This document shows positions 38,429 to 52,014 of a stretch of DNA of 64,000 nt, one piece after another. Position 1 is the stretch's first letter; each line of letters begins with the position of its first letter. The DNA comes from Blepharisma stoltei ATCC 30299. Taxonomy: Eukaryota > Protista > Ciliophora. Made by a program: the position numbers and the translations under genes. The DNA lies in the NCBI GenBank assembly GCA_965603825.1, contig CBFDEM010000024.1, forward strand, positions 124,001-188,000. Direction: 5' to 3'. The notes under the pieces were generated by a model. That model was given only the letters and a program-made list of their open reading frames with translations, did not search any database and had not been told where the DNA came from.

Positions 38429-40294
38429 ATGTGCAAGTTATTAAAGTGGCCACTCAGTATAATGCTTAATGGAATGATTATTTCCATTACTAGTGTAATG
38501 TTTTTTTCTAATAAGCTTGATCTGTTTTGTGACCTTTTGAAAACAATTAGAGACGCTCAGAGCCATCACAAGTCCAAGGACATCTGTATTGGCAATATGC
38601 TCTGATTTTACATAAATAGTCAATATTTTAAAAGTGCTTCAGTAACACCACAGCTTCCCAGCATTGACCTAAAATTTGAAGTAGAATTAGATTACGACCA
38701 TACTGACAATGACTCTTATGTAGATACCCTCATCAGTGGCTATGAAAAAGATTTGAAGCAATGCCAAGATGATACCTCACAATTATTTCCTCAACCAAAA
38801 AAAGGGTATGAAAACTACCCAAAGCATTTAAGCGAGAACGATATGATTTTATCAGAACTGAAAAATCTGGAATATCAAGAAGCCCTGAAAAGTTACTTAG
38901 ATTATATAGAAGAAAAATCAAAGACAGAAATAGTTGAAAAGCCACCAACACCTCCTCTCCATGATGACGAATTTTTATGCGACATTTGTGGAGATGGGGA
39001 TTACGAAGACGATGACTTAATAGTCATCTGTTCAATGTGTAATACCGGCGTCCATATGAAATGCTATGGAATTTTAATTGTCCCCGATACTGATTGGTAT
39101 TGTATAGCATGCCAAGAGCGTCCATCCAGCAGAAATGAAATCCGATGTGCATTGTGCCCAAATAAAGGCGGAGTGATAAAGCCCACGCTCCTCTATACTT
39201 CTCCTCAGTCTTCATACCCAAACTACCCCTGAACAGGAGATTCAGAGCAGATTTGGGCTCATATTTTCTGCATTATTCACCTAGAAATCTCCTGCATACA
39301 AGATCAAGACTTAATGTCAGAAATCGATCTTTCAAAAATTGATAAGAACCGATTTCAGCTTAGATGCCAAAAATGCAATACCAAAAATGGGGCCTGTGTA
39401 CAATGTCATCATGGTAGATGCACGTTAGGGTTCCATCCTTATTGTGCCAAAAGCAATTTTATTAGTACAAGAGATAAGACTGGATTTGATGATATGAACT
39501 GTTATTGTGTTAAACACAGGCCACTGAAGCTAAGAAAACATTTGGAAAGCTTAGAAAAGAAGACTGTGGAAGACATATTATATTTGGCAAGAGTTTTTGA
39601 GAAATTTGAAGCTAGAAAAAATAGGCAGCTGTCTGTGAAGAGGAAGAGAGTTGGAGGAGAGTTTTCTTATGATGAAAAAAGTGAGCTTATAAAAATTGTT
39701 GAAGAGAGGCTGAAGAAAGAAGAGAAATCGGGGTTTAAATTTAGCTTTAATATGTCAAATACTCAGAAAAACCTAAGAGGGCAAGTTAAAGTGGTTAGGC
39801 CTTTATTATACACAGCTTTACACCCCCAAATCATTTTATTAGAAAAAATTACTTTGCCTGGCAGGAAATTCCAAGATTGCTATAAATGCTATAACGACTC
39901 TATCTTCCCAGTCCTTAAAGAAGAAATTCAGCTGTTGGGTAAACCCCTAGTAATTTATGAGCCTAATTTAAAAGGAAAAAATAAACTGAAAAAATTCATG
40001 AAACCAATAGGAGGAGCCAAAAGAGGGAGAAAACCGAAACAGGTCGAAATCGGAGACCTCGTTAGCCAAGAGCTTCATTGTGTATGTAGGAAGCCATTTG
40101 TTGAGGCTACACCGAAGAAAAAAAGCGAAACAGATGAAGAATACGAAGAAAGGATAAAAGAGAGCCAAATGATTGCTTGTGACGAGTGTGGAAGTTGATT
40201 TCATAGTGAATGTGTAGGACTGAAGAAGTATGAGGTTCCAGAAACTTTTTATTGTGTGGAGTGCTTGCCGAAAAAAGCGAAAATAGAGAATTAG
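38429..40294 (+). CDS. PHD / PZP (BRPF/JADE/AF10-like) chromatin reader with additional C-terminal PHD
   Basis: CDICGDG...CSMCNTGVHMKCYG, CALCPNKGG, WAHIFC, GACVQC...FHPYC, CVCRKP...MIACDECGSW(TGA)FHSECVG. Start uncertain (38429-38597). Confidence 0.88.
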
Positions 40295-40486: not shown

Positions 40487-41974
40487 ATGAAGGACGAAAA
40501 ATTAGTATGAAATGAAAACTCAAATCAGCATTGGCTGATTGGTTATGCTATCACAATTAATTCAGTAATTGGTGCAGGATTATTAAGCATTCCTTGAGGA
40601 TACTATGAAGCAGGATGGTCGCTTGGCATTTTTTCACAAATTTTATCAAGTGCAATTTGTGCTGTGCTAATTTTTCAGCTGCTTCAAGCAATAAGTAGAA
40701 CTGAAGTTTTATGGAATATGAAGGCTAACGGGTACACAATTAACCCAATGTCCATAAGTTCGCTATTTAGAAATCAGAGTAGGGATGATTATTTATTCAA
40801 ACCAGAAAAGATCGACACAGAAAATAACTCTTTTATCGAAGATATCGATATGGAGCCAAAATTAAACGATAGAAAATTTGATTTATGTGAAATGACTCAA
40901 GTTTTACTAGGAAACTTCCATGCCAAACTATTTATGGGAATTTTACTTGTGCAATGCATTGCTATATTAACTGGGTATTGCACTATCTTTGCTTCATCAT
41001 CAGCATCAATTATTCCATTATGGGGAGGCACTTGCAATATCTACGATGACTCAGATCTGAACGAATCATGTAGGTTTAAATATTGGGCATTTTTAGCAAT
41101 TTTTGCCTGCTGTGTGATTTTTTTGACAATAATTGGCATAGTGGAGCAGCTAGCATTTCAAATCACTATGTGTGCTGTGAGAATATTAGTCATCGTGACA
41201 ATAGTTGGAACTTCAATCTATGCCATAGCTTCAGATACAAAACTTGACGACACAGGAAGCAATGATGCAGATCCAGATATTGTAAACCCTTGAAGGCTAG
41301 GTCTCTGCTTTCCAATTATTGTTATGGCTTTATTTTTCCATAATACAATACCTACAACTACACAGCATGTCAGAGATAAGCCAAAAAGCATCCCATTAAT
41401 TGCTTGAACTGTTTTGATAACAACTAGTCTCTTTTATTTATCAATTGGCTTAATTGTGCCTTTTGCAGCAGATGAAGTAGAAAAAATGGTCAGTTTAAAT
41501 TGGACAGATTATTCTGCAGGCGAAGATCCTGATAAGCGATCATGGTGGGCTTATGTTATATCTTATTTTGTCCTTTTACTACCTGCTTTTGATGTTATGT
41601 CAATTTTTCCAATTATTGCAATTAATTGCTCAGATAACCTTATGTCATTAAAGTATGGCCATTTTGGTGATGAAGAAATTAGTAAGAAACATTGAGTTTT
41701 GTATAGATTGGCTGTTGCAATTCCACCTATATTAATTGCACTTTTTGTGTATGATTTAAGCTATATTTCAGAGATTACTGGATCATTAATGTTTTTAAGC
41801 TTAGGGGTATATATTCCACTATTTTGTTTAGTTACAAAAAGATTAGTAGATAGACCGAGCCCATATGATGGCTGGTTCTCTTCTGATAGAAGTGCATGGG
41901 CGATGATTTTGTTTACACTTTATTTATTTATAGCTATTTGGGTGCTGATTTTAATTTATGTTATTACGGAATAG
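40487..41974 (+). CDS. Amino-acid transporter (AAAP/SLC38, TMEM104-like)
   Basis: NSVIGAGLLSIPW(TGA)GYYEAGW, RKFDLCEM, FHNTIP; ~11 TM; one frame via TGA. Confidence 0.88.
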
Positions 41975-42891
41975 ATGAAAATATCTAAATTAATGAGCTT
42001 TAGGTTTTTTAATGATTATAAAAATTGAGGATATTATTATGATAATTGAAATAATTATAATTAGTTGTAAGCAGCATAATTTATAGGAGGAAATTTATTT
42101 TCTCTTTAGTTGATAAAGTGCTGCATATTAATGACGTATAAATCATATCATTTATAGGATTTCTCAGATGTTTAGAATTTTCCAAAAATTCCTTTTGGTC
42201 TTCAATATTAAGAAAAAATTTCTTGAATATATATTTGAATAAGACAATTAATTTTAGTTGTCTTTTATCAATTTTTTCTTTCAGCTGCTTTTTCTCTTTC
42301 AGAAAGTTCTGCTTTGAGCAAAATTTTATCTCATCTCATGTGACTCTTACCTTATTCATAAAACAAATTTTTGTATGTAGCTCATTTATGTTCTAAATAA
42401 AGTCTATTTTAGAACACATTATCCATATTTAAGATTGGCTAAGTCTTATATCAGTAATTAGCCCAGCCAAAAAAATTTCCTCGTTTTTTTAAAGTTTTTG
42501 AACAGCTTTTTAAAATAATGATTAATCTTTATAAATTTAAATCTTTGATTTATAAATAAATTATCTACAACTAAATTGAATTTTTTAGTGAAAGTTTCTC
42601 TATCGATTAAAATCGTCAAATAAAATATGTATTTATTAAGTAACACCCCTTATGAGCTACCTTAAAAATTCTCCAACCAATAGTAAAAATTTTAATTCTT
42701 AAAAATTTTTTGGTTTTCTATTCCTAGCCTAAATTTGAGCTCTCCTTACTAATTTTAGCTTAAAATCCTTAAAAGTCATACTTCGTAACGACAATTTTAT
42801 ATTTTTTATCTCTATATTCCATATTCAGCTATCCGCCCAGCAAAATCAAATATGACAAATGGGTTTCAAAATATTTACATAATAATATCTA

Positions 42892-45063
42892 ATGCAAAAA
42901 TTCATAGTGATTTTAAGCACAATTATTAGCCCAATACTCAGTTTTATTTATCAATCACTAGATGATTATATGACATTAGGTTGGGAAATCAACGGAAACT
43001 ACATAACTTTTAATTTTCTCTGCACTGGAAGCTGATGTGGACTAGGATTGGCCAATACCATGTTTGGGTGTGACATGTACATAGCAATTGGTGGCGGAAA
43101 TGTTACTGTCCCTATTACTATTTTGGACATGTGGTCGGAAAATCATGATACTCCAAAATATGACACAGATTTCTGAACTGGAGAATATAATATCATTAAT
43201 TCCACAGGCTATTTCTATCCTAACGTTATTTTAAAGGATACTGGCAAGACAGTGAATTTTATAAATGCCACTTTTACAAGACTTTTAGACACAGGCGATA
43301 TATGGGACACTGTAATTATCCCAGGCCGAAGTATAAATATCAATTGGGCCTATAGAACTAAAAACAGTGGCAAATTTGATGAGCATAATGGCTATTCCCA
43401 AGGAAAAATTAATTTTGCAAAAAATATTGAGGACGAAACCTTCACATCCTTAAGCAGCGAAAAAACAGGCCTTTCGCTCCATGCATTAGCTATGACGGCG
43501 TTTTGGCTTATTGTAGCTCCTATATCAATTATGGTCGCAAGATATTGCAAGCACCTTCGATGTTGGTATTTCTGCCACCTTATTGGTTTTAGTATAGTAA
43601 TTTTGGGTACTATAATCAGTGCTTCACTTACATATAAAATCCATACAGTTTCTTATATCCAAACAACATCAAAGCCAAGGTACCATTCAAGACTGGGTCT
43701 TATTTTGACGTGTTTAGTTATGGGACAAGGCATTTTAGGCCTCCTCTGTAAAATTCTGCAGATTAAATTTTCTGTTTATGGGATGATTGCTCATGCAAGA
43801 AGAGCTCACAAAGCAGTAGGATATGGAATGCTTATTGTCGGGCTTATAAACTGTGCGTTTGGGTTTGATATTTATAGCAGTTCTGGCGTTTACTTTGCAG
43901 GGCTTGCTATTATGCTAGTGATTATGCTGATATTTGAGCTCAGGCATCAGCTTGCATTTTGGAAGCCTTCATTTTTGTGCTTAAAAACGCTTCCAGATAT
44001 GACGCATCAAGAAGCGATGGAAAAAATCAATAATGAAGGGCTAAAAATAATGTTTTATGAGGATCTTGTAATGAATGTCGGAAAATTTATTACTTCGCAT
44101 CCTGGAGGAGCATTTATGCTTAGAGATACTATAGGCGAAGATGCAGGAAAATATATGATAGGCTGCAGTAATATAAATGGAGACTTAATGCCATATTCTC
44201 ACTCACTCCCTGCTTTTGACTATACAAGAAAGCTTGCAATTGGCAAAATCCCATATCCAGAAGGATATTTACAGATAATCGACGAAGAAGAATCACAGGA
44301 TTGTATGTTTTGGAATGTTTCTTTTCAAGAAAAATTATCTGAAAAAATCAAGCTCATTTCTTTATATTCTCAGCATTTTCGGCTTAGTCAGAGAGCCCAC
44401 AATCCAGCCTGGCTTGGAAAACATTTTAAAATTACTGCAACAATTAATTGCATAGTGATATCACGATACTACAGCGCATTTTTCGCAAATCTCCACAGCT
44501 GGGCTCAGGAACTTGACAACAGTGGGAAATTGGCTAAAAAATACCCTGCTTGTAATGAAGGAAATTTGCAGTTTATTTATAAAACTTATGAGAATGGCCA
44601 GATGTCACAGTTTCTAGATAAAATAGAAGATACTGAAGCTCTCGAAATAAAAGGACCAGTTGGCCCTGGTTTATTATTAAATTCATTTTCTGGCAATTTT
44701 GTCGGTTTCGCTGGCGGCACAGGTCTAGTCCCTTTTTTAGATGTAGCTTACCATCTGTGATTAAACAGAAAAAACCCTCCTGCGATGAAATTCACATTGT
44801 TTGCGTCTTTTCGTAATTTTGATGATTCGTTTTGCATGGATCTACTGGATGCAACTTCAAATGCTTTAGGAGAGAATCGATTTAAGCTAATTCAGGTTAT
44901 TGATAGAAAAGCTAAAGAAATGAACTTGACCGAGCTAGTTAAAAAATATGCAGGAACTAAGCCTGATGCTGCTTGGGTGTGTGGCCCTTCAGGCTACAAT
45001 AATTTTATCAAAAACCTTCTAATTGAAGGAGGCTTAGAAAGAAACAAAATAATAGTGATGTAA
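42892..45063 (+). CDS. DOMON + cytochrome b561 + cytochrome b5 + FAD/NAD(P)-binding reductase fusion, paralog 1 (intronless)
   Basis: Signal peptide; DOMON WCGLGLANTMFGCDM...NWAY...FDEH; b561 His in LHALAM, WYFCH, YHSRLG, AHKAVG; b5 HPGG...HS; RYYS, GQMSQFL, KGPVG, FAGGTGLVPF, VCGP. Confidence 0.9.
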
Positions 45064-45169
45064 ATGGTTTTTAATTCGATTTTTAATAATAATATAAATT
45101 ACAAGATTTTTGGCCAGTACTTTGGCAAGCAATCTTAAAAATTTGGCAATCCGTTGCATAATTTAAAAA

Positions 45170-47365
45170 ATGGCTTTAAAACCTTTTGTGTTGCTCATTT
45201 TCATCGCTGTTACTGTTAGTGAGTGGATATCTCAAGTCCTTGATGACCAAATGACTTTGAAATGGGAAGTAAGCGGCAATAAAATCACTTTCAACTTCTA
45301 TGTAACCTTTACTTAGTGTCCAAACGCCCAATGGTGTGGGATCGGATTTGCCAATACTATGTTCGGGTGTGATATGTTAATCGCAGTTGGAGGTGGAACT
45401 GCACAAGTTCCTATACAGGTATGAGATATGTGGTCAGAAAACCATGATACCCCTTCAATCGACACAGATTTCTGGAGTGGTGTAACCAGTGTGTTCGATG
45501 TCACAGGAACTTTTACGCCGAATAGCCAAAGTTCGCCAAGCAATGGCAGAAATCAAAACTCAGGGACAATAGATGCTACTTTTTCGAGGCTTCTTTATAC
45601 AGGAGATATATGGGATGCTTATATTGACCCAACAAAAAAAATGAATATTAATTGGGCTTATAAAGGTGGTGGCAGTTATGGAAATTTCGATAAGCATAAT
45701 GACTACTCACAAGGGAAAATTAAGTTAGCGGCTTCATCTGCTGATGCTTATTTCAGTTCAGAGTCAAGTGACAAGTCAGAATTTGACACTCATCAAGGTC
45801 TAATGACAATCGCTTGGATTATTACTGCACCAATCGGCATTGTTATTGCAAGGTATCTCAAACATTTCCGCTTCTGGTATTTATTCCACTTACTCTTGCT
45901 TAGCTACTCAGTTCTGTCCACAATTATCAGTGTTTCATTGGTCTACAAAACCCATGAAACATCTTATCTTTCAGCTACAAAAAAAGTCAGATACCATTCA
46001 AGACTAGGATTCGTTCTGACTTGCTTCGTGATCGGGCAGCTATTTATAGGCTTCATCTGCAAGATGCTGCAAATGTTTTCTCATCAATTCGGGATGATTG
46101 CTCAAATTAGAAGGGCCCATAAAGTACTTGGCTACGCAATGCTGACTGTAGGGTTAATGAATAATTCTTATGGGTATGAGATATTTGGCTCTGCTTCATC
46201 TTATTATGTTGGCTTAGCAATCCTATTAGGTGGCTGGCTACTTCTTGAAATAAGACATCAGTTTACTTATAAATGGACATGGCTTTTACTCCAGAGAAAG
46301 CCTAAAGAAATGACCCATAAAGAAGCCATGGAGAAGAAAAAAATGAAAATTATGTTTTATGACGACTTAGTGCTAAATGTCACCCATTTTATTGATTCTC
46401 ATCCTGGAGGAGCATATATGCTGAAAGATTCTATAGGTGAGGATGCTGGGAAATATATGGTAGGTTGTAGCAGTAGTGGTGGAGAGCTAGCTCCTTATGA
46501 GCACTCTAAGCCAGCATTTGACCTTGCGAAGAAACTGGCTATTGGAAGAGTTCCTTATCCTGAAGGGTATTTACAAAAAAAAAATCAAGATGTTTCTCAG
46601 GATGAAATGGTTTGGAATATCAGCCTTCAGAAAAATCTAAACCCAAGCACAAAATTCATATCTTTGCTCTCTTCTCAATTTATCATGTCCCAAGTTCCAG
46701 AGCACTCCTGGTGGCTTGGGAAGCATTTCAAAGTGTCAGCCAAAATCAAAGGAAATACTGTGTCTAGGTATTATAGTGCGTTTTTCGCTAACCTCCACAA
46801 CTGGGCAGATGAACTTGACGGATCAGGAAATCTTTCCAAAAAATATCCAGAGTCCAAAACAGGCAGCTTGAATTTTATTTTTAAAGTTTACGATAAAGGA
46901 GCTGTAACCCAATATATGCATAATTTAGGAGAAAGCGGAGAACTTCACCTAAAAGGACCCTTAGGGCCTGGCTTGATGCTAAATGAATTTTCTGGAGACT
47001 ATCTCGGGTTTGCGGGAGGCACTGGCCTGGTTCCATTTTTGGATGTAGCGAATTACATGTGAATAAATAGGGCCAGCCAGCTACCTTTTACCTTTACTTT
47101 GTTTGTGTCATTCAGGACTAATGATGACGCTTTTTGTGTTGATTTGCTTGAAGGAACTTCACAAGCGTTGGGTGAAAATAAATTCAAGCTAATTAAACTC
47201 ATTGATAAACAAGCCCAGGAGATTAAGCTATCTGATGTAGTTGCGAAATACGTTGGGATGAATCCTGCTGGAGCTTGGGTGTGTGGACCTTCTGGGTATA
47301 ATAAATATATCAAAGATCTGTTGACTGGAGCAGGGATGGAAAGAAATAAAGTTATAGTGATGTAA
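45170..47365 (+). CDS. DOMON + cytochrome b561 + cytochrome b5 + FAD/NAD(P)-binding reductase fusion, paralog 2 (2 exons)
   Basis: Same motif series as paralog 1; 15-nt intron 45302-45316. Confidence 0.9.
45302..45316 (+). other. 15-nt intron GTAACCTTTACTTAG
   Basis: Removal gives FNFY-CPNAQW, colinear with intronless paralog 1 (FNFL-CTGSW). Confidence 0.92.
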
Positions 47366-47514
47366 GCTCCAATAGTTATTAGGTAATCGAAACTTTTTAT
47401 ATAAATAAATTGCCTTGTTCATCATTTATTATAATTAAATAAATTTTAATGTCAATAATCCATTATAAATATCTGACTTCTTCAATTTTTCATTATTTAT
47501 ATCTTTATATATAA

Positions 47515-48450
47515 ATGGGACCTTATTTATCAACCCCTCGTACAGAAAAGCACACCCAGTTTGCTGAAAACTCTCGCCTGCGGTTTGCTTCATCAGATAT
47601 GCAGGGCTGGCGTATGACAATGGAAGATGCCAAAATTGTAAACTTAACCTTTGACACCTCTTCAGAAATATTTGGAGTTTACGATGGTCATGGCGGCTCA
47701 GAAGTTGCTGAATTTGTAACTCGTCACTTATGCCAAGAACTTCTCAATAATCCCAATTACCACCAAGGAAATATAGATATAGCCTTACAAGAAACCTATT
47801 TAAGGCTCGATGAGCTTCAAAACACCCAAGATGGTATAAAAGAGCTTATAAGGATTTCCAAAAAATTGCCTGAAGGCTCCCCAGTCAATCCTGATGAACT
47901 TATAGTTCAAGCAGGCTGCACTGCAGTAACTGCATTAATTAAAGGTAACCAATTATACGTGGCAAATGCTGGAGATTCCCGATGTGTCCTATGCAGAGAT
48001 GGAGTCGCAGTTGATCTTTCTATAGATCATAAGCCTGACCTCCCTGAAGAAAAAAATAGAATTTATAGAGCAGATGGCATGGTGGAGGATGGCAGAGTTA
48101 TGGGAAATTTAAATTTATCTCGGTCAATTGGTGATTTAGAATATAAAACAAATTTAAGTATCCCACAAAGAGAACAGATGATATCAGCTTTTCCTGATGT
48201 AAGAAAAGAAACGTTAGGACCCCGTGATGAGTTTATTGTGCTTGCCTGTGATGGGGTATGGGACATGCTGACTTCTCAACAGTGTGTTAATTTTATTAGG
48301 GAAAGAATTAATGCTAAGCCGCTACAACAGATCATTGAAGAATTATTGGACAGATGCCTTTCACCAAGCGTCGGGGCTAATGCAGGACTAGGATGTGATA
48401 ACATGACTGCAATTATTGTCCAATTTAAACATCCATTAAGTAATCAATAA
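47515..48450 (+). CDS. Protein phosphatase 2C (PPM family)
   Basis: MGPYLSTP, MQGWRMTMEDA, GVYDGHGG, VANAGDSR, DHKP, LACDGVWD, GCDNMT. Confidence 0.97.
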   Translation: MGPYLSTPRTEKHTQFAENSRLRFASSDMQGWRMTMEDAKIVNLTFDTSSEIFGVYDGHGGSEVAEFVTRHLCQELLNNPNYHQGNIDIALQETYLRLDELQNTQDGIKELIRISKKLPEGSPVNPDELIVQAGCTAVTALIKGNQLYVANAGDSRCVLCRDGVAVDLSIDHKPDLPEEKNRIYRADGMVEDGRVMGNLNLSRSIGDLEYKTNLSIPQREQMISAFPDVRKETLGPRDEFIVLACDGVWDMLTSQQCVNFIRERINAKPLQQIIEELLDRCLSPSVGANAGLGCDNMTAIIVQFKHPLSNQ

Positions 48451-48457
48451 TTAAAAA

Positions 48458-49771
48458 ATGCTTATATTGCTCCTAAATTTATTTTTCTGCAAAGCCCAAA
48501 TAGAAATCCCGCTCACCCGCATCCCTTCTTCCATAAAGCTATCTCAGCCTTCAAGTTTCACTATGCTAGCAACCAATATCTCAATTGAGCTTTCTAACAT
48601 TAGAAATGTAACCTTAATTTAGTTTCAATATTTAGGACCAATTTATATAGGAACTCCTCCTCAGGAATTTAAAATGATTTTTGACACAGGCTCTTCAGTG
48701 ATTTTTATATAGTGACTATGAGTCCCAGATGTCTCATTAAAAAATACTAGTGAACGTCAAACTTTTGATCCTGAAAGTTCGTCAACCTTTAAGTCAGGCT
48801 CAAAAGTGTATAAACTTGCTTATGGCAAAGGGGAAGCGCTTGGGAATTTATGCCAAGATACTGTGTCCTTTTCTGATGACTATTCTGTGTCAGCTCTAGA
48901 CCAATATTTTGTCCTTGTAGAAAACGATACTATGTATGAGAATTTTGTCGCAGATGGAATTTTGGTAAAAATTATATAGGGACTCGCCTTTAAAAGGCTT
49001 AGTGATTGGTATGATCCAGTTGTACTGAGCTTAAAAAAGCAGAAAAAAATAGAAAAAGCAGTTTTTGGGGTTTATCTTGGAGATGAAAATGGAGACCAGA
49101 AAATAAGCTCGAATATTATATTGGGAGGGTACGATTTGGCTAAATATGCAAGGGATGAATATATAACGTGAACTAAAGTTTATTCAGACTCAGGATTTTG
49201 GACAGTTAGGCTTACATCTGTAAGTGTAGGAAATGATGAAATAAGCATACGTACATCAGTCTTAGCAATTGTGGATACAGGAACCAGCTTAATTATTGCC
49301 CCTGGTGGAGAAATTACACAGATTAACCGCTTGATTTCTCTCAATAAATATTGTGAAGAGTATGAAGGATATACTGTTTGTGACTGTGGAGATAAGCATA
49401 ATATTGATGAATATCCTGATTTAATTTTAGGCATTGGAGAAATTTATTTATCAATATCTCCCAGAACTTATTTTAAGAAATTTGGAAGTTTTTGCAAATC
49501 ATTGTTAGTAAGCAATGGAAATAAAAATTTCTGGGTACTAGGAGATGTGTTTTTAAGAAACTATTACACAATATTTGATATGGATAATGAAAGAATTGGA
49601 TTTGTGACGTCTATTAATATGCAGATCAAAGAAAAGAAAACGTATTATTTCTTGTTTATTATTGCTGGGATTTTAGTTTTAATAGCGTTGAGTATAGGAG
49701 TTTGGCTGAAAAAGAGGCTTGAAATTAGAAGAAATACAGTTCAAGATGTGATTGATATGCATTTGATATAA
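48458..49771 (+). CDS. Pepsin-family aspartic protease with C-terminal TM anchor, 4 exons
   Basis: Signal peptide; QYLGPIYIGTPPQEF, FDTGSS|W(TGA)LW(TGA)VP, YGKG, DGIL|GLAF, VDTGTS, WVLGDVFLR. Introns 48608-48622, 48698-48712, 48965-48979. Confidence 0.93.
48608..48622 (+). other. 15-nt intron GTAACCTTAATTTAG
   Basis: Phase 0, in-frame TAG, in the aspartic protease. Confidence 0.9.
48698..48712 (+). other. 15-nt intron GTGATTTTTATATAG
   Basis: Splits the catalytic motif DTGSS|WLWV. Confidence 0.93.
48965..48979 (+). other. 15-nt intron GTAAAAATTATATAG
   Basis: Splits the conserved DGIL|GLAF motif. Confidence 0.93.
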
Positions 49772-49818: not shown

Positions 49819-50826
49819 TTAAACAGCAACTGCTTCGACTACCCAGTCAGTTTTAGCAGGTCTAATATTTATAACTCTAAGTCCATTTTTTTCGAAAAAT
49901 GGTGCTAATTCTTCTCTTGATCTAACTTTACCATCAGTTATAGCCCACCACCATATGTCAAGGTACCTTTCAAACTTATACTGCTGATGAGCTCTATCCA
50001 TCATGAGGTCTACAAAATATAATTTGTTCCCTTTTTCTAAAGCCCGTCTACAATTTCTTAAAATTGAGTCTAAGGAATGATCATTATATTCTCCAGATAT
50101 GCATTTCATGACAATAGCATCATACCCTTCTGGCACATAATCAATATAATTTCCTGCAGTTACTTTAATTCTATTCGTTAATTTCTTTTCATGAATTTTT
50201 TTCTCAGTAATTTGCCGATACAAGGTTTGGTCATAAATAGTCCCTTGGAAATTCCTATATGTCTCTGCTAAAGAAATAATCAAAGCACCTCCATGAGCCC
50301 CTATTTCCAAAACCTTCCTGGCATTTCTTAAATCAATAGCTTGGCCTACTTCCTCTGATACCTGTAAAACTTTACTAGAAATTCCACTCACAAATTGCTT
50401 TAAATATTGTGGCTTTTGGCTTAAAAAATCTGTAAAAGTTGCATTATAATACACTTCAGGAGCGGTTTGGTCCGACATTAAGCATTGAGAAACAACACTT
50501 AAAAAGTCATATTGCCAAGGTGCTAAGCTTAATCTGACAAAGTCTGCATAAGTATCATCAATAAATCTCTCTGAAATCACATTATTAGAGAATCTTCTTG
50601 ATTGCTCATCATATTCAAAAATCCCTGCAGATTCTAGTGCAAGTAAAACACGTTCAAGCTTATCGCTGATCACTTGAGTTTCCTGGGAAAGATCTTCAGC
50701 TGTTTTTGGGCCTAGTGAAAGTAATTTTGGTATATTAAAATCTAATGCAGAATATAAAAGAGCACCTAATTGAGGACCAAAAAGGATTTTTTGAACTTTT
50801 CTATCTACGTCAGAATGTTGCAGCAT
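49819..50826 (-). CDS. O-methyltransferase-fold protein (dimerisation wHTH + Methyltransf_2), paralog A
   Basis: GPKTAEDLS...LERVLLAL; VLEIGAHGG; AGNYIDYVPEGYDAIVMK; ILRNCRRAL; DGKVRSREE; VVEA. Confidence 0.85.
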   Translation of the reverse strand: MLQHSDVDRKVQKILFGPQLGALLYSALDFNIPKLLSLGPKTAEDLSQETQVISDKLERVLLALESAGIFEYDEQSRRFSNNVISERFIDDTYADFVRLSLAPWQYDFLSVVSQCLMSDQTAPEVYYNATFTDFLSQKPQYLKQFVSGISSKVLQVSEEVGQAIDLRNARKVLEIGAHGGALIISLAETYRNFQGTIYDQTLYRQITEKKIHEKKLTNRIKVTAGNYIDYVPEGYDAIVMKCISGEYNDHSLDSILRNCRRALEKGNKLYFVDLMMDRAHQQYKFERYLDIWWWAITDGKVRSREELAPFFEKNGLRVINIRPAKTDWVVEAVAV

Positions 50827-50958: not shown

Positions 50959-52014
50959 TTAAACAGCTGCTGCTTCAATAACTATATCAGTTTTCGCAGG
51001 AGTTATATTTAGAATTCTAAACCCAGTCCTATTCAAAAACGCTTCAATTTCTACTCTTGTTCTCACTCTCCCATCAGTTAAGCTCATTGCCACAATATCA
51101 TTAAATCTTTCGAATCTATAATTTGTATGAGTCTTATCAATAGCAATATCAACTAAGAATATTTTTGCCCCCACGTTTAAAGCATTTCTCATATTAACCA
51201 GTATTTTTTCAAAATTGGCATCATTATTTTCTTTCGAAATGCATTTCGCCACAATTGTGTCATAGCCTATTGGTATTGATTCAAGATAATTTCCTGAAAC
51301 AAATTTTAATTTTTCTTGAAAATTATTTTCTTGGATTTTTTTCTCTGTTATATCTTTAAATAAATCAATATCGTAAACAGTGCCTTGAATATGCTGATAA
51401 AGCCTGGCTAATTCTATTAATAAAGCACCACCTTGTCCACTGATTTCTAAAACTTTGGTGGAGTCACTTAAATTTATCCCTAAGCCAATTTCATTGACTG
51501 TCCAAAGAATGTGGCTTGTGATACCATTAACAAATTGTTCTAGATAAATAGGCTTCTGGCCAAGAAAATCAATGAAATTTGTATTGTAGTATTCTTCTGG
51601 AGCTGTTTTATCCGATTTTAAGCTTTTTGGGATTACGCTAAGGAAATCCATCTGCCAAGGAGCTAAATAGAATTTAATATAGTCAAGATAAGCTTCTTTC
51701 AAAAAATGAACAGAAATAGAATTCAATGCAAATTGCTTTGTTACAGGGTTATAATTAAAGAGCTTTTTTGTTTCAAGTGTCAGTAAAACACGCTCAAGCT
51801 TATCGCTGCGCGTTGAAGTTGCAAGACCCAACTCTTCTGCTGTCTTTGGACCAGTTTCTAAAAGCTGTGGGATTTTTAGATCAACTACAATGTAAAGAAG
51901 TGAGCCAAGCTGAGGCAAAAGAAGCATTTTTTCGATTTCTTTGTCAACTACTTCTGTTGGTTTTCCGAAAAGTTTTTCAACTTGTTTTTGAATGACATCA
52001 GAAACTTGATGCAT
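50959..52014 (-). CDS. O-methyltransferase-fold protein, paralog B
   Basis: Colinear with paralog A; VLEISGQGG, SGNYLESIPIGYD, DGRVRTRVE. Confidence 0.85.
   Translation of the reverse strand: MHQVSDVIQKQVEKLFGKPTEVVDKEIEKMLLLPQLGSLLYIVVDLKIPQLLETGPKTAEELGLATSTRSDKLERVLLTLETKKLFNYNPVTKQFALNSISVHFLKEAYLDYIKFYLAPWQMDFLSVIPKSLKSDKTAPEEYYNTNFIDFLGQKPIYLEQFVNGITSHILWTVNEIGLGINLSDSTKVLEISGQGGALLIELARLYQHIQGTVYDIDLFKDITEKKIQENNFQEKLKFVSGNYLESIPIGYDTIVAKCISKENNDANFEKILVNMRNALNVGAKIFLVDIAIDKTHTNYRFERFNDIVAMSLTDGRVRTRVEIEAFLNRTGFRILNITPAKTDIVIEAAAV

Follow-up and report, generated by a model that had tools for sequence, protein, structure and literature searches.

The described proteins that come closest to the products of a tandem gene pair at positions 42892-47365 of the stretch analyzed here, 64,000 nucleotides from a macronuclear contig of Blepharisma stoltei, a heterotrich ciliate (G000:C24:124001-188000, hereafter the window), belong to several systems. 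In CYBDOMs (HYP1, CRR and the animal FRRS1/SDR2) an extracytoplasmic DOMON domain precedes a four-histidine cytochrome b561 core, and in the Arabidopsis member HYP1 a relay of three hemes delivers electrons to ferric and cupric acceptors (PMC10784544). In NOX, FRE and FRO proteins a cytoplasmic NAD(P)H/FAD module is combined with two stacked b hemes in the membrane, some FRE members, those of Naegleria and oomycetes, additionally carrying a DOMON on the outside (PMC3591440). A cytochrome b5 followed by FAD_binding_6 and NAD_binding_1 domains is found in CYB5R4 (Ncb5or) and in the C-terminal half of nitrate reductase, and in cellobiose dehydrogenase (CDH) a flavin feeds a DOMON-type cytochrome with a Met/His-ligated b heme, which delivers single electrons to external acceptors.

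Each gene of the pair unites such parts in one chain and encodes, in this order, a signal peptide, a DOMON domain, a b561 domain, a cytochrome b5 and a b5-reductase-type FAD/NAD module. The DOMON, predicted to face outwards and placed directly N-terminal to the four-His b561 core, and the similar spacing of the histidines are shared with CYBDOMs, candidate Met/His ligands are conserved as well, and the predicted arrangement of the two b561 hemes at the outer and inner ends of the helices is that described for HYP1 (PMC10784544). However, CYBDOMs end after the membrane domain and their donor is soluble cytoplasmic ascorbate, whereas here a 366-residue extension follows, consisting of a fused cytochrome b5 and an FAD/NADH-type reductase. 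With NOX, FRE and FRO proteins, including the DOMON-bearing FRE members, the two proteins share the cytoplasmic NAD(P)H/FAD module and the two stacked membrane b hemes (both predicted here), but the membrane domain is b561 and not FRD, the flavin module is of the FAD_binding_6/NAD_binding_1 and not the FAD_binding_8/NAD_binding_6 type, and an extra b5 heme would stand between the flavin and the membrane hemes. CYB5R4 and the C-terminal half of nitrate reductase are the nearest structural neighbours of residues ~370-723, yet these are soluble, with cytoplasmic acceptors or a molybdenum centre, while here the same module is tethered to a putative transmembrane di-heme core; CDH, in turn, is a secreted and soluble protein with a GMC-type flavoenzyme, a sugar donor and no membrane span.

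Judging from sequence comparison and structural modelling, we consider it rather probable that both gene products are self-sufficient transmembrane reductases of a single chain, acting as outward, NADH-driven wires. This is the most economical reading and agrees with that of the initial annotation; the proteins are placed among CYBDOMs and flavocytochrome transmembrane reductases, as conduits in which the ascorbate input would have been replaced. They would be functional analogues of NOX/FRE but are no members of that family, since the FRD domain test failed: none of the NOX/FRE domains (PF01794, PF08022, PF08030) gave a Pfam match on either protein.

Gene structure and expression

Blepharisma translates UGA as tryptophan and has introns of 15 nt, and the reading frames were determined with UGA as Trp. 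Gene 1 (42892-45063; both genes and all of their features lie on the forward strand) is intronless and encodes 723 amino acids (aa), ending with a TAA stop at 45061-45063; three in-frame TGA codons (43033-43035, 43174-43176 and 44758-44760) stand against 11 TGG. Gene 2 (45170-47365) encodes 726 aa, ends with TAA at 47363-47365 and is divided by a single 15-nt intron, GTAACCTTTACTTAG, with GT...AG borders (45302-45316), the removal of which restores the frame. Its exon 1 (45170-45301) contains aa 1-44, i.e., the signal and the start of the DOMON, and exon 2 (45317-47365) the remainder, aa 45-726, with two in-frame TGA codons (45422-45424 and 47060-47062) against 17 TGG in the gene. The translations are identical to database proteins P0001 (gene 1) and P0004 (gene 2), and the two proteins are 55% identical to one another.

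RNA data came from four small runs (X1-X4) of one study containing the stretch. Gene 2 is spanned from 45115 to 47389 by single assembled contigs of 2260 nt and 2158 nt (runs X1 and X2), from which exactly 15 nt are missing at 45302; these contigs therefore represent spliced RNA and confirm the intron, and the mRNA of gene 2 continues through both UGA codons as far as the TAA. For gene 1, the coverage of 42856-45060 is made up of separate short contigs, including one that reads across the UGA at 44758, and the word depth is several-fold below that of gene 2. Since none of the RNA contigs listed bridges 45061-45114, the two genes appear to be transcribed as separate mRNAs. The initial annotation had described the five-part architecture, given UGA as Trp and one 15-nt intron, and had named a single mRNA behind each protein as a point to confirm: coordinates, motifs, Pfam results and RNA all agree with the former, while the latter is borne out for gene 2 by a spliced contig reading past its UGAs, gene 1 being represented by the short contigs described above.

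A diverged allele or strain (95-99% identity) is represented in runs X3 and X4. The 40 differing sites listed for it lie within 43404-47257, and 31 of them are synonymous; one difference, 47062 A>G, turns the in-frame TGA at 47060-47062 into TGG. The non-synonymous differences are clustered in the linker between the b5 and FAD-binding domains (46583-46606).

It could be supposed that adjacent genes, or a stop-interrupted pseudogene, have been misread as one protein, as under the standard code there are three and two TGA codons in the respective frames, plus one TAG in gene 2. This is an artefact to which we assign next to no probability: one spliced RNA contig runs over all of gene 2, the strain variant has TGG in place of TGA, the database proteins are identical, and at the TGA sites (positions 48 and 623/626) the aligned homologues, among them those of Stentor, a ciliate with the standard genetic code, have Trp or aromatic residues. 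Separate genes and a pseudogene were thus both rejected on the basis of RNA evidence and conservation.

Domain assignment and cofactor ligands

Pfam was run on the full-length proteins P0001 and P0004 with curated cut-offs, and its results, the matches to solved structures and the fold searches were concordant on every domain. DOMON (PF03351) scored 33.6 bits in P0001 and 47.3 bits in P0004 (cut-off 32.7), Cyt-b5 (PF00173) 26.3 and 28.7 bits (cut-off 23.7) and FAD_binding_6 32.9 and 30.1 bits. Cytochrom_B561 (PF03188) was found in P0004 with 30.8 bits at a cut-off of 23 (34.9 bits in the genome scan) and stayed below the Pfam listing on the full-length protein of gene 1; NAD_binding_1, with 22.0 bits in P0001 at a cut-off of 22, did so on that of gene 2. 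The best PDB match of the family profile was Physarum NADH-cytochrome b5 reductase (2eix, E 2e-28), and the profile also matched the DOMON of dopamine beta-hydroxylase (DBH; 4zel, E 4e-8), Arabidopsis b561 (4o6y, 4e-7), Dcytb (2e-6) and the CDH cytochrome (4qi3, 4e-3).

The N-terminal hydrophobic signal of gene 1 (aa 1-23, 42892-42960) has its hydropathy peak at aa 5-23 and a low-confidence helix at 2-12, and is presumably cleaved. It is followed by the DOMON (Pfam; aa 16-180, 42937-43431), with the candidate heme ligands M57 (in NTMFG) and H165 (FDEH), and by the b561 core of five transmembrane (TM) helices (43453-43962), in which H197 (LHAL) and H265 (YHSRLG) would bind an outer heme and H229 (FCH) and H306 (RAHK) an inner one. 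Cytochrome b5 (Pfam; aa 372-452, 44005-44247) contributes H403 (HPGG) and H437 (YSHS). The FAD-binding (aa 471-590) and NAD-binding (aa 601-723) domains, together at 44302-45060, were recognized by Pfam, by the profile match to 2eix and by Foldseek, and contain RYYS (525-528), KGPVG (587-591), GGTG (608-611) and CGP (697-699), so that the RxY(S/T) FAD motif, the GxGxxP-type NAD(P)H motif and the CGP motif of b5 reductases and FNR are all present. In exon 2 of gene 2 the corresponding domains lie at 45791-46177 (b561), 46334-46549 (b5) and ~46604-47362 (FNR module).

Fold searches made use of an AlphaFold2 model computed from a 45-sequence alignment (whole chain pLDDT 89, pTM 0.75), the N-terminal half being also folded and searched on its own (pLDDT 90, pTM 0.78) for DOMON and b561 matches. 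The DOMON fold gave a VIA Z of 14.7 to 4zel (DBH), with 12.8 to 6jt6 and 12.7 to 1d7c among the CDH and pyranose dehydrogenase cytochromes. Residues 188-350 gave a VIA Z of 13.6 to 4o6y (rmsd 2.7 Å over 154 residues) and 13.4 to Dcytb (5zlg), and the b561 core a Foldseek probability of 1.00 and a TM of 0.56 by target; designed helical bundles score nearly as high, the b561 fold match alone being weak and the sequence match decisive. The membrane domains of NOX5 and SpNOX were lower structural neighbours of this core (VIA Z 9.9-11.2). The C-terminal third was assigned to b5 reductases, Foldseek on the full-length model returning solely FNR and b5 reductase folds, with 7rom and 2eix as top matches.

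Conservation was assessed in 45 aligned homologues with a mean column identity of 19%. Five histidines (H197, H229, H306, H403 and H437) are each present in all 45, H265 is present in 44, and M57 and H165 in 40 each; of the FNR motif residues, R525 is kept in 41, Y527 and S/T528 in 44 each, G609-T610-G611 in 43-44, C697 in 40 and G698 in all 45. Cofactor ligands retained in 40-45 of the 45 at so low an identity, and the predominance of synonymous changes between strains (31/40), constitute a signal of selection. H197, H229, H265 and H306 align with the four heme-ligating His of 4o6y (HP..M, LVH, SLHSW and WH motifs) and M57 with the axial Met74 of 4qi3, while H165 is a candidate DOMON heme ligand that may correspond to CDH His176. 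What we take to be an insertion of ~10 residues, relative to classical b5, precedes the second b5 histidine. Where the proteins have the acidic pair DD646-647, the aligned Physarum b5 reductase 2eix likewise has DD, and in b5 reductases this Asp excludes NADPH; since this pair is kept and the best match is to b5 reductases, the sequence suggests the use of NADH rather than NADPH.

Topology and proposed electron path

Five TM helices (aa 191-218, 225-250, 260-292, 296-328 and 332-357) are indicated by the hydropathy as well as by the model, and Lys/Arg residues are enriched in the predicted cytoplasmic loops, as expected from the positive-inside rule. The match to 4o6y and 5zlg starts at residue ~42 of these structures and corresponds to canonical TM2-TM6, therefore canonical TM1 is absent, the helix count is odd and the two ends of the membrane domain come to lie on opposite sides. 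Given the N-terminal signal, the five helices and the positive-inside rule, the DOMON is predicted to be outside or luminal and the b5/FNR part cytoplasmic, with H197 (helix 1) and H265 (helix 3) located at the outer helix ends and H229 (helix 2) and H306 (helix 4) at the inner ones. Retention of the ligands in both paralogs and the placement of DOMON and b5/reductase on opposite sides, both anticipated by the initial annotation, thus hold, the former across the homologues and the latter as a prediction from five TM helices and a signal.

A classical b561 spans the membrane six times and has an ascorbate site on the cytoplasmic side. With its five helices and a match that begins at canonical TM2, the protein is, by sequence, a homologue of the b561 core and not a six-helix b561 of the classical, ascorbate-dependent kind; as regards the ascorbate-site residues, the profile alignment to 4o6y is unreliable in the TM2-TM3 loop.

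In the mechanism that we propose, a secreted or luminal DOMON would be loaded with one b heme (Met57/His165) and the five-helix b561 core with two, bound by H197/H265 on the outside and by H229/H306 near the cytoplasm, and a cytoplasmic cytochrome b5 (H403/H437) would be followed by the b5-reductase-type FAD/NAD(H) domain. Electrons from cytoplasmic NADH would then pass through FAD, the b5 heme, the inner b561 heme, the outer b561 heme and the DOMON heme to an acceptor across the membrane, and the fused b5/b5 reductase would take the place of ascorbate, the usual b561 donor. By the precedent of plant CYBDOM proteins, the acceptor would most likely be a small oxidant, with chelates of ferric or cupric ions favoured. 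The stability of the fusion, which is kept in at least 12 paralogues, in six ciliate genera and in chytrids, supports such a wire.

The two halves might, alternatively, work independently, with b5/b5 reductase as a membrane-anchored NADH-b5 reductase (Ncb5or-like) serving cytoplasmic acceptors and DOMON-b561 using some other donor, and it is true that fusions of b5 and b5 reductase with purely cytoplasmic roles (CYB5R4/Ncb5or, nitrate reductase) resemble the C-terminal half most closely in structure. Such a division is nevertheless very improbable: the b5 fold starts merely ~14 residues past helix 5, the five-part order is found in every family locus matched full length, no b561 was detected outside the family in the genome, and the ligands of both halves persist together in ciliates and chytrids.

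Genome-wide context and nature of the acceptor

The 41-Mb assembly was scanned for domains by six-frame HMM searches, which gave 8 b561 and 23 DOMON matches, all 8 of the former within family loci, and no match to Ferric_reduct (PF01794), NAD_binding_6 (PF08030) or ALO (PF04030; GULO/GLDH, the terminal enzymes of ascorbate synthesis). On these sequence grounds Blepharisma seems to have no b561 and no NOX/FRE-like system other than this family, and a lack of ALO, Ferric_reduct and NAD_binding_6 would account for the need for a built-in donor and an oxidase substitute. FRD proteins are absent from 18 alveolate proteomes (PMC3591440), and GULO and GLDH are absent from Paramecium (PMC4396506).

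The missing NOX-type domains would also speak for an NAD(P)H oxidase analogue, in which the outer or the DOMON heme reduces O2 to superoxide/H2O2 (for defence, signalling or matrix cross-linking) or feeds or reduces a peroxidase. This reading draws further on a large sister group with a DUOX-like logic, in which an N-terminal animal haem peroxidase domain precedes DOMON-b561-b5-FNR: the chytrids Lobulomyces and Clydaea and many environmental proteins have the same module behind such a domain (An_peroxidase, DOMON, b561, Cyt-b5 and FAD/NAD reductase in P0151, P0079, P0068, P0078, P0100, P0101 and P0087), those of Lobulomyces angularis and Clydaea vesicula being named 'Peroxidase mlt-7' and the corresponding Atlas cluster comprising 179 members. 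These relatives, though not the window genes, share with DUOX an outside peroxidase domain, a transmembrane heme wire and an inside NAD(P)H flavin domain, but their wire is DOMON-b561-b5-b5 reductase, not FRD-FAD_8-NAD_6, and no EF-hands were detected in them. The window proteins themselves have no peroxidase domain, the Pfam results contain no EF-hands or other NOX-style regulatory parts, and a DOMON heme with six-coordinate Met/His ligation, such as those of CDH and AIR12, normally shuttles electrons and does not bind O2, which makes an oxidase unlikely.

A number of points weigh against the outward, metal-reducing wire that we prefer. The DOMON Met or His is substituted in 5 of the 45 homologues, the absence of FRD and ALO refers to six-frame HMM searches of one assembly, and the peroxidase-fused relatives suggest oxygen or peroxide chemistry as much as metal reduction. 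Docking of the b561 core (186-362) with b5 (366-458), including three hemes, gave a score of 0.01, which is neutral with regard to binding.

The view expressed in the initial annotation, that of a functional NOX/FRE analogue built from non-homologous parts, is strengthened by the lack of FRD, NAD_binding_6 and ALO matches and by the DUOX-like chytrid relatives, although the electron flow and the acceptor are what we infer and not what was observed. Its suggestion that the architecture was new has to be narrowed, as this architecture is already present in public databases for many ciliates; full-text literature searches turned up no description or characterisation of a DOMON-b561-b5-FNR protein, a mention in earlier classification surveys of DOMON or b561 being possible.

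The chances are, in our estimate, about even that in ciliates devoid of NOX/FRE and of their own ascorbate all outward transmembrane electron transport proceeds via this class of flavocytochromes, which chytrids would possess in a DUOX-like form, and that the five-cofactor chain (FAD and four b hemes: b5, two b561 and DOMON), made of non-NOX parts, is an independent invention of the NADPH-oxidase/ferric-reductase principle. If the chain conducts, it would be a second, independently assembled one-polypeptide route for NAD(P)H electrons across a membrane, b561 proteins would not need to depend on ascorbate, and the reduction of extracellular or vacuolar iron, copper or oxygen by ciliates could be explained, FRD and ALO domains having gone undetected in this genome. 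The peroxidase-fused relatives would provide a non-homologous DUOX analogue for comparative mechanistic work, and a compact self-sufficient transmembrane wire would be attractive for synthetic bioelectronics.

Paralogues and taxonomic distribution

At least 12 loci in the B. stoltei genome match P0001 over its full length, with 27-61% identity and the five-part order kept. A profile search of 1.84 billion representatives (50%-identity clusters) returned 286 proteins below 1e-30, and of the 150 best ~40 match over the entire length; the five-part architecture goes far beyond what chance would produce. Family members were found in Stentor coeruleus, Blepharisma stoltei and B. japonicum, Fabrea salina, Protocruzia adherens, Tetrahymena utriculariae and Paramecium sonneborni, the public entries for the ciliate members being unnamed or auto-named. 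A 2531-aa protein (P0042) from the transcriptome of the amoebozoan Arcella intermedia contains 12 stretches matching the family profile, the best at profile positions 9-300 (DOMON-b561); the matches suggest repeated DOMONs and extend the module beyond ciliates and chytrids.

A maximum-likelihood tree was constructed from 19 rows of alignment A2, the remaining 26 rows being left out. Gene 1 was placed, with strong support, as sister to the paralogue at 297 kb of the same contig (C24), then joined by a copy at 242 kb of C64 and only then by gene 2, therefore the tandem genes are not mutual closest relatives. At least two older subfamilies are common to Stentor and Blepharisma, and Tetrahymena and Paramecium form a separate clade.

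The public model of the paralogue at G000:C24:297341-299524 (minus strand; P0002) has 662 aa and starts within the DOMON, whereas the six-frame match at this locus, with 4 TGA and 1 TAG, covers residues 1-723 of P0001; because of this the annotated N-terminus is probably truncated, owing to a missed tiny intron or UGA. Another paralogue, at G000:C51:544509-548117 (minus strand), apparently has four tandem DOMON domains ahead of b561-b5-FNR, and a second, more degraded-looking copy at C51:554790-556962 (plus strand) has many TGA and TAA codons inside the matches.

Outside the family loci, DOMON matches were found at about nine sites with open frames of ~170-280 aa, including C33:58574-58942, C33:61920-62243, C30:468750-469052, C10:563714-564049, C53:165175-165561, C4:559847-560128, C54:18865-21456 and C12:61380-61658. 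By sequence, these may be stand-alone AIR12-like proteins, and the wire might have partners, soluble or anchored, among them. As potential partners they bear on another explanation, in which the proteins are dedicated electron suppliers to a separate luminal or extracellular enzyme or cofactor, such as a copper monooxygenase, a stand-alone DOMON, monodehydroascorbate or a quinone pigment. The pairing of b561 with dopamine beta-hydroxylase and that of CDH with LPMO would be analogues, such a role would agree with a DOMON fold nearest to DBH and to the CDH and pyranose dehydrogenase cytochromes, which pass electrons to partner enzymes, and the 12 or more paralogues suggest several compartments or partners. 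Still, no partner was identified, the genes adjoining the pair are unrelated and, to our knowledge, ciliate genes are not organised in functional clusters; we regard a dedicated supplier as improbable and retain the wire to small oxidants as the preferred reading.

Neighbouring genes

The pair is surrounded by a PHD-like zinc finger gene (39314-40198), a piece of an amino-acid transporter (40664-41293), a PP2C (47515-48450) and an aspartyl protease fragment (49271-49771). A functional tie of the pair to its adjoining genes was considered and rejected, these neighbours being unrelated. Further downstream, and without an evident link to the pair, are two tandem genes of plant-type O-methyltransferases on the minus strand (49819-50826 and 50959-52014), with Methyltransf_2 and Dimerisation domains.

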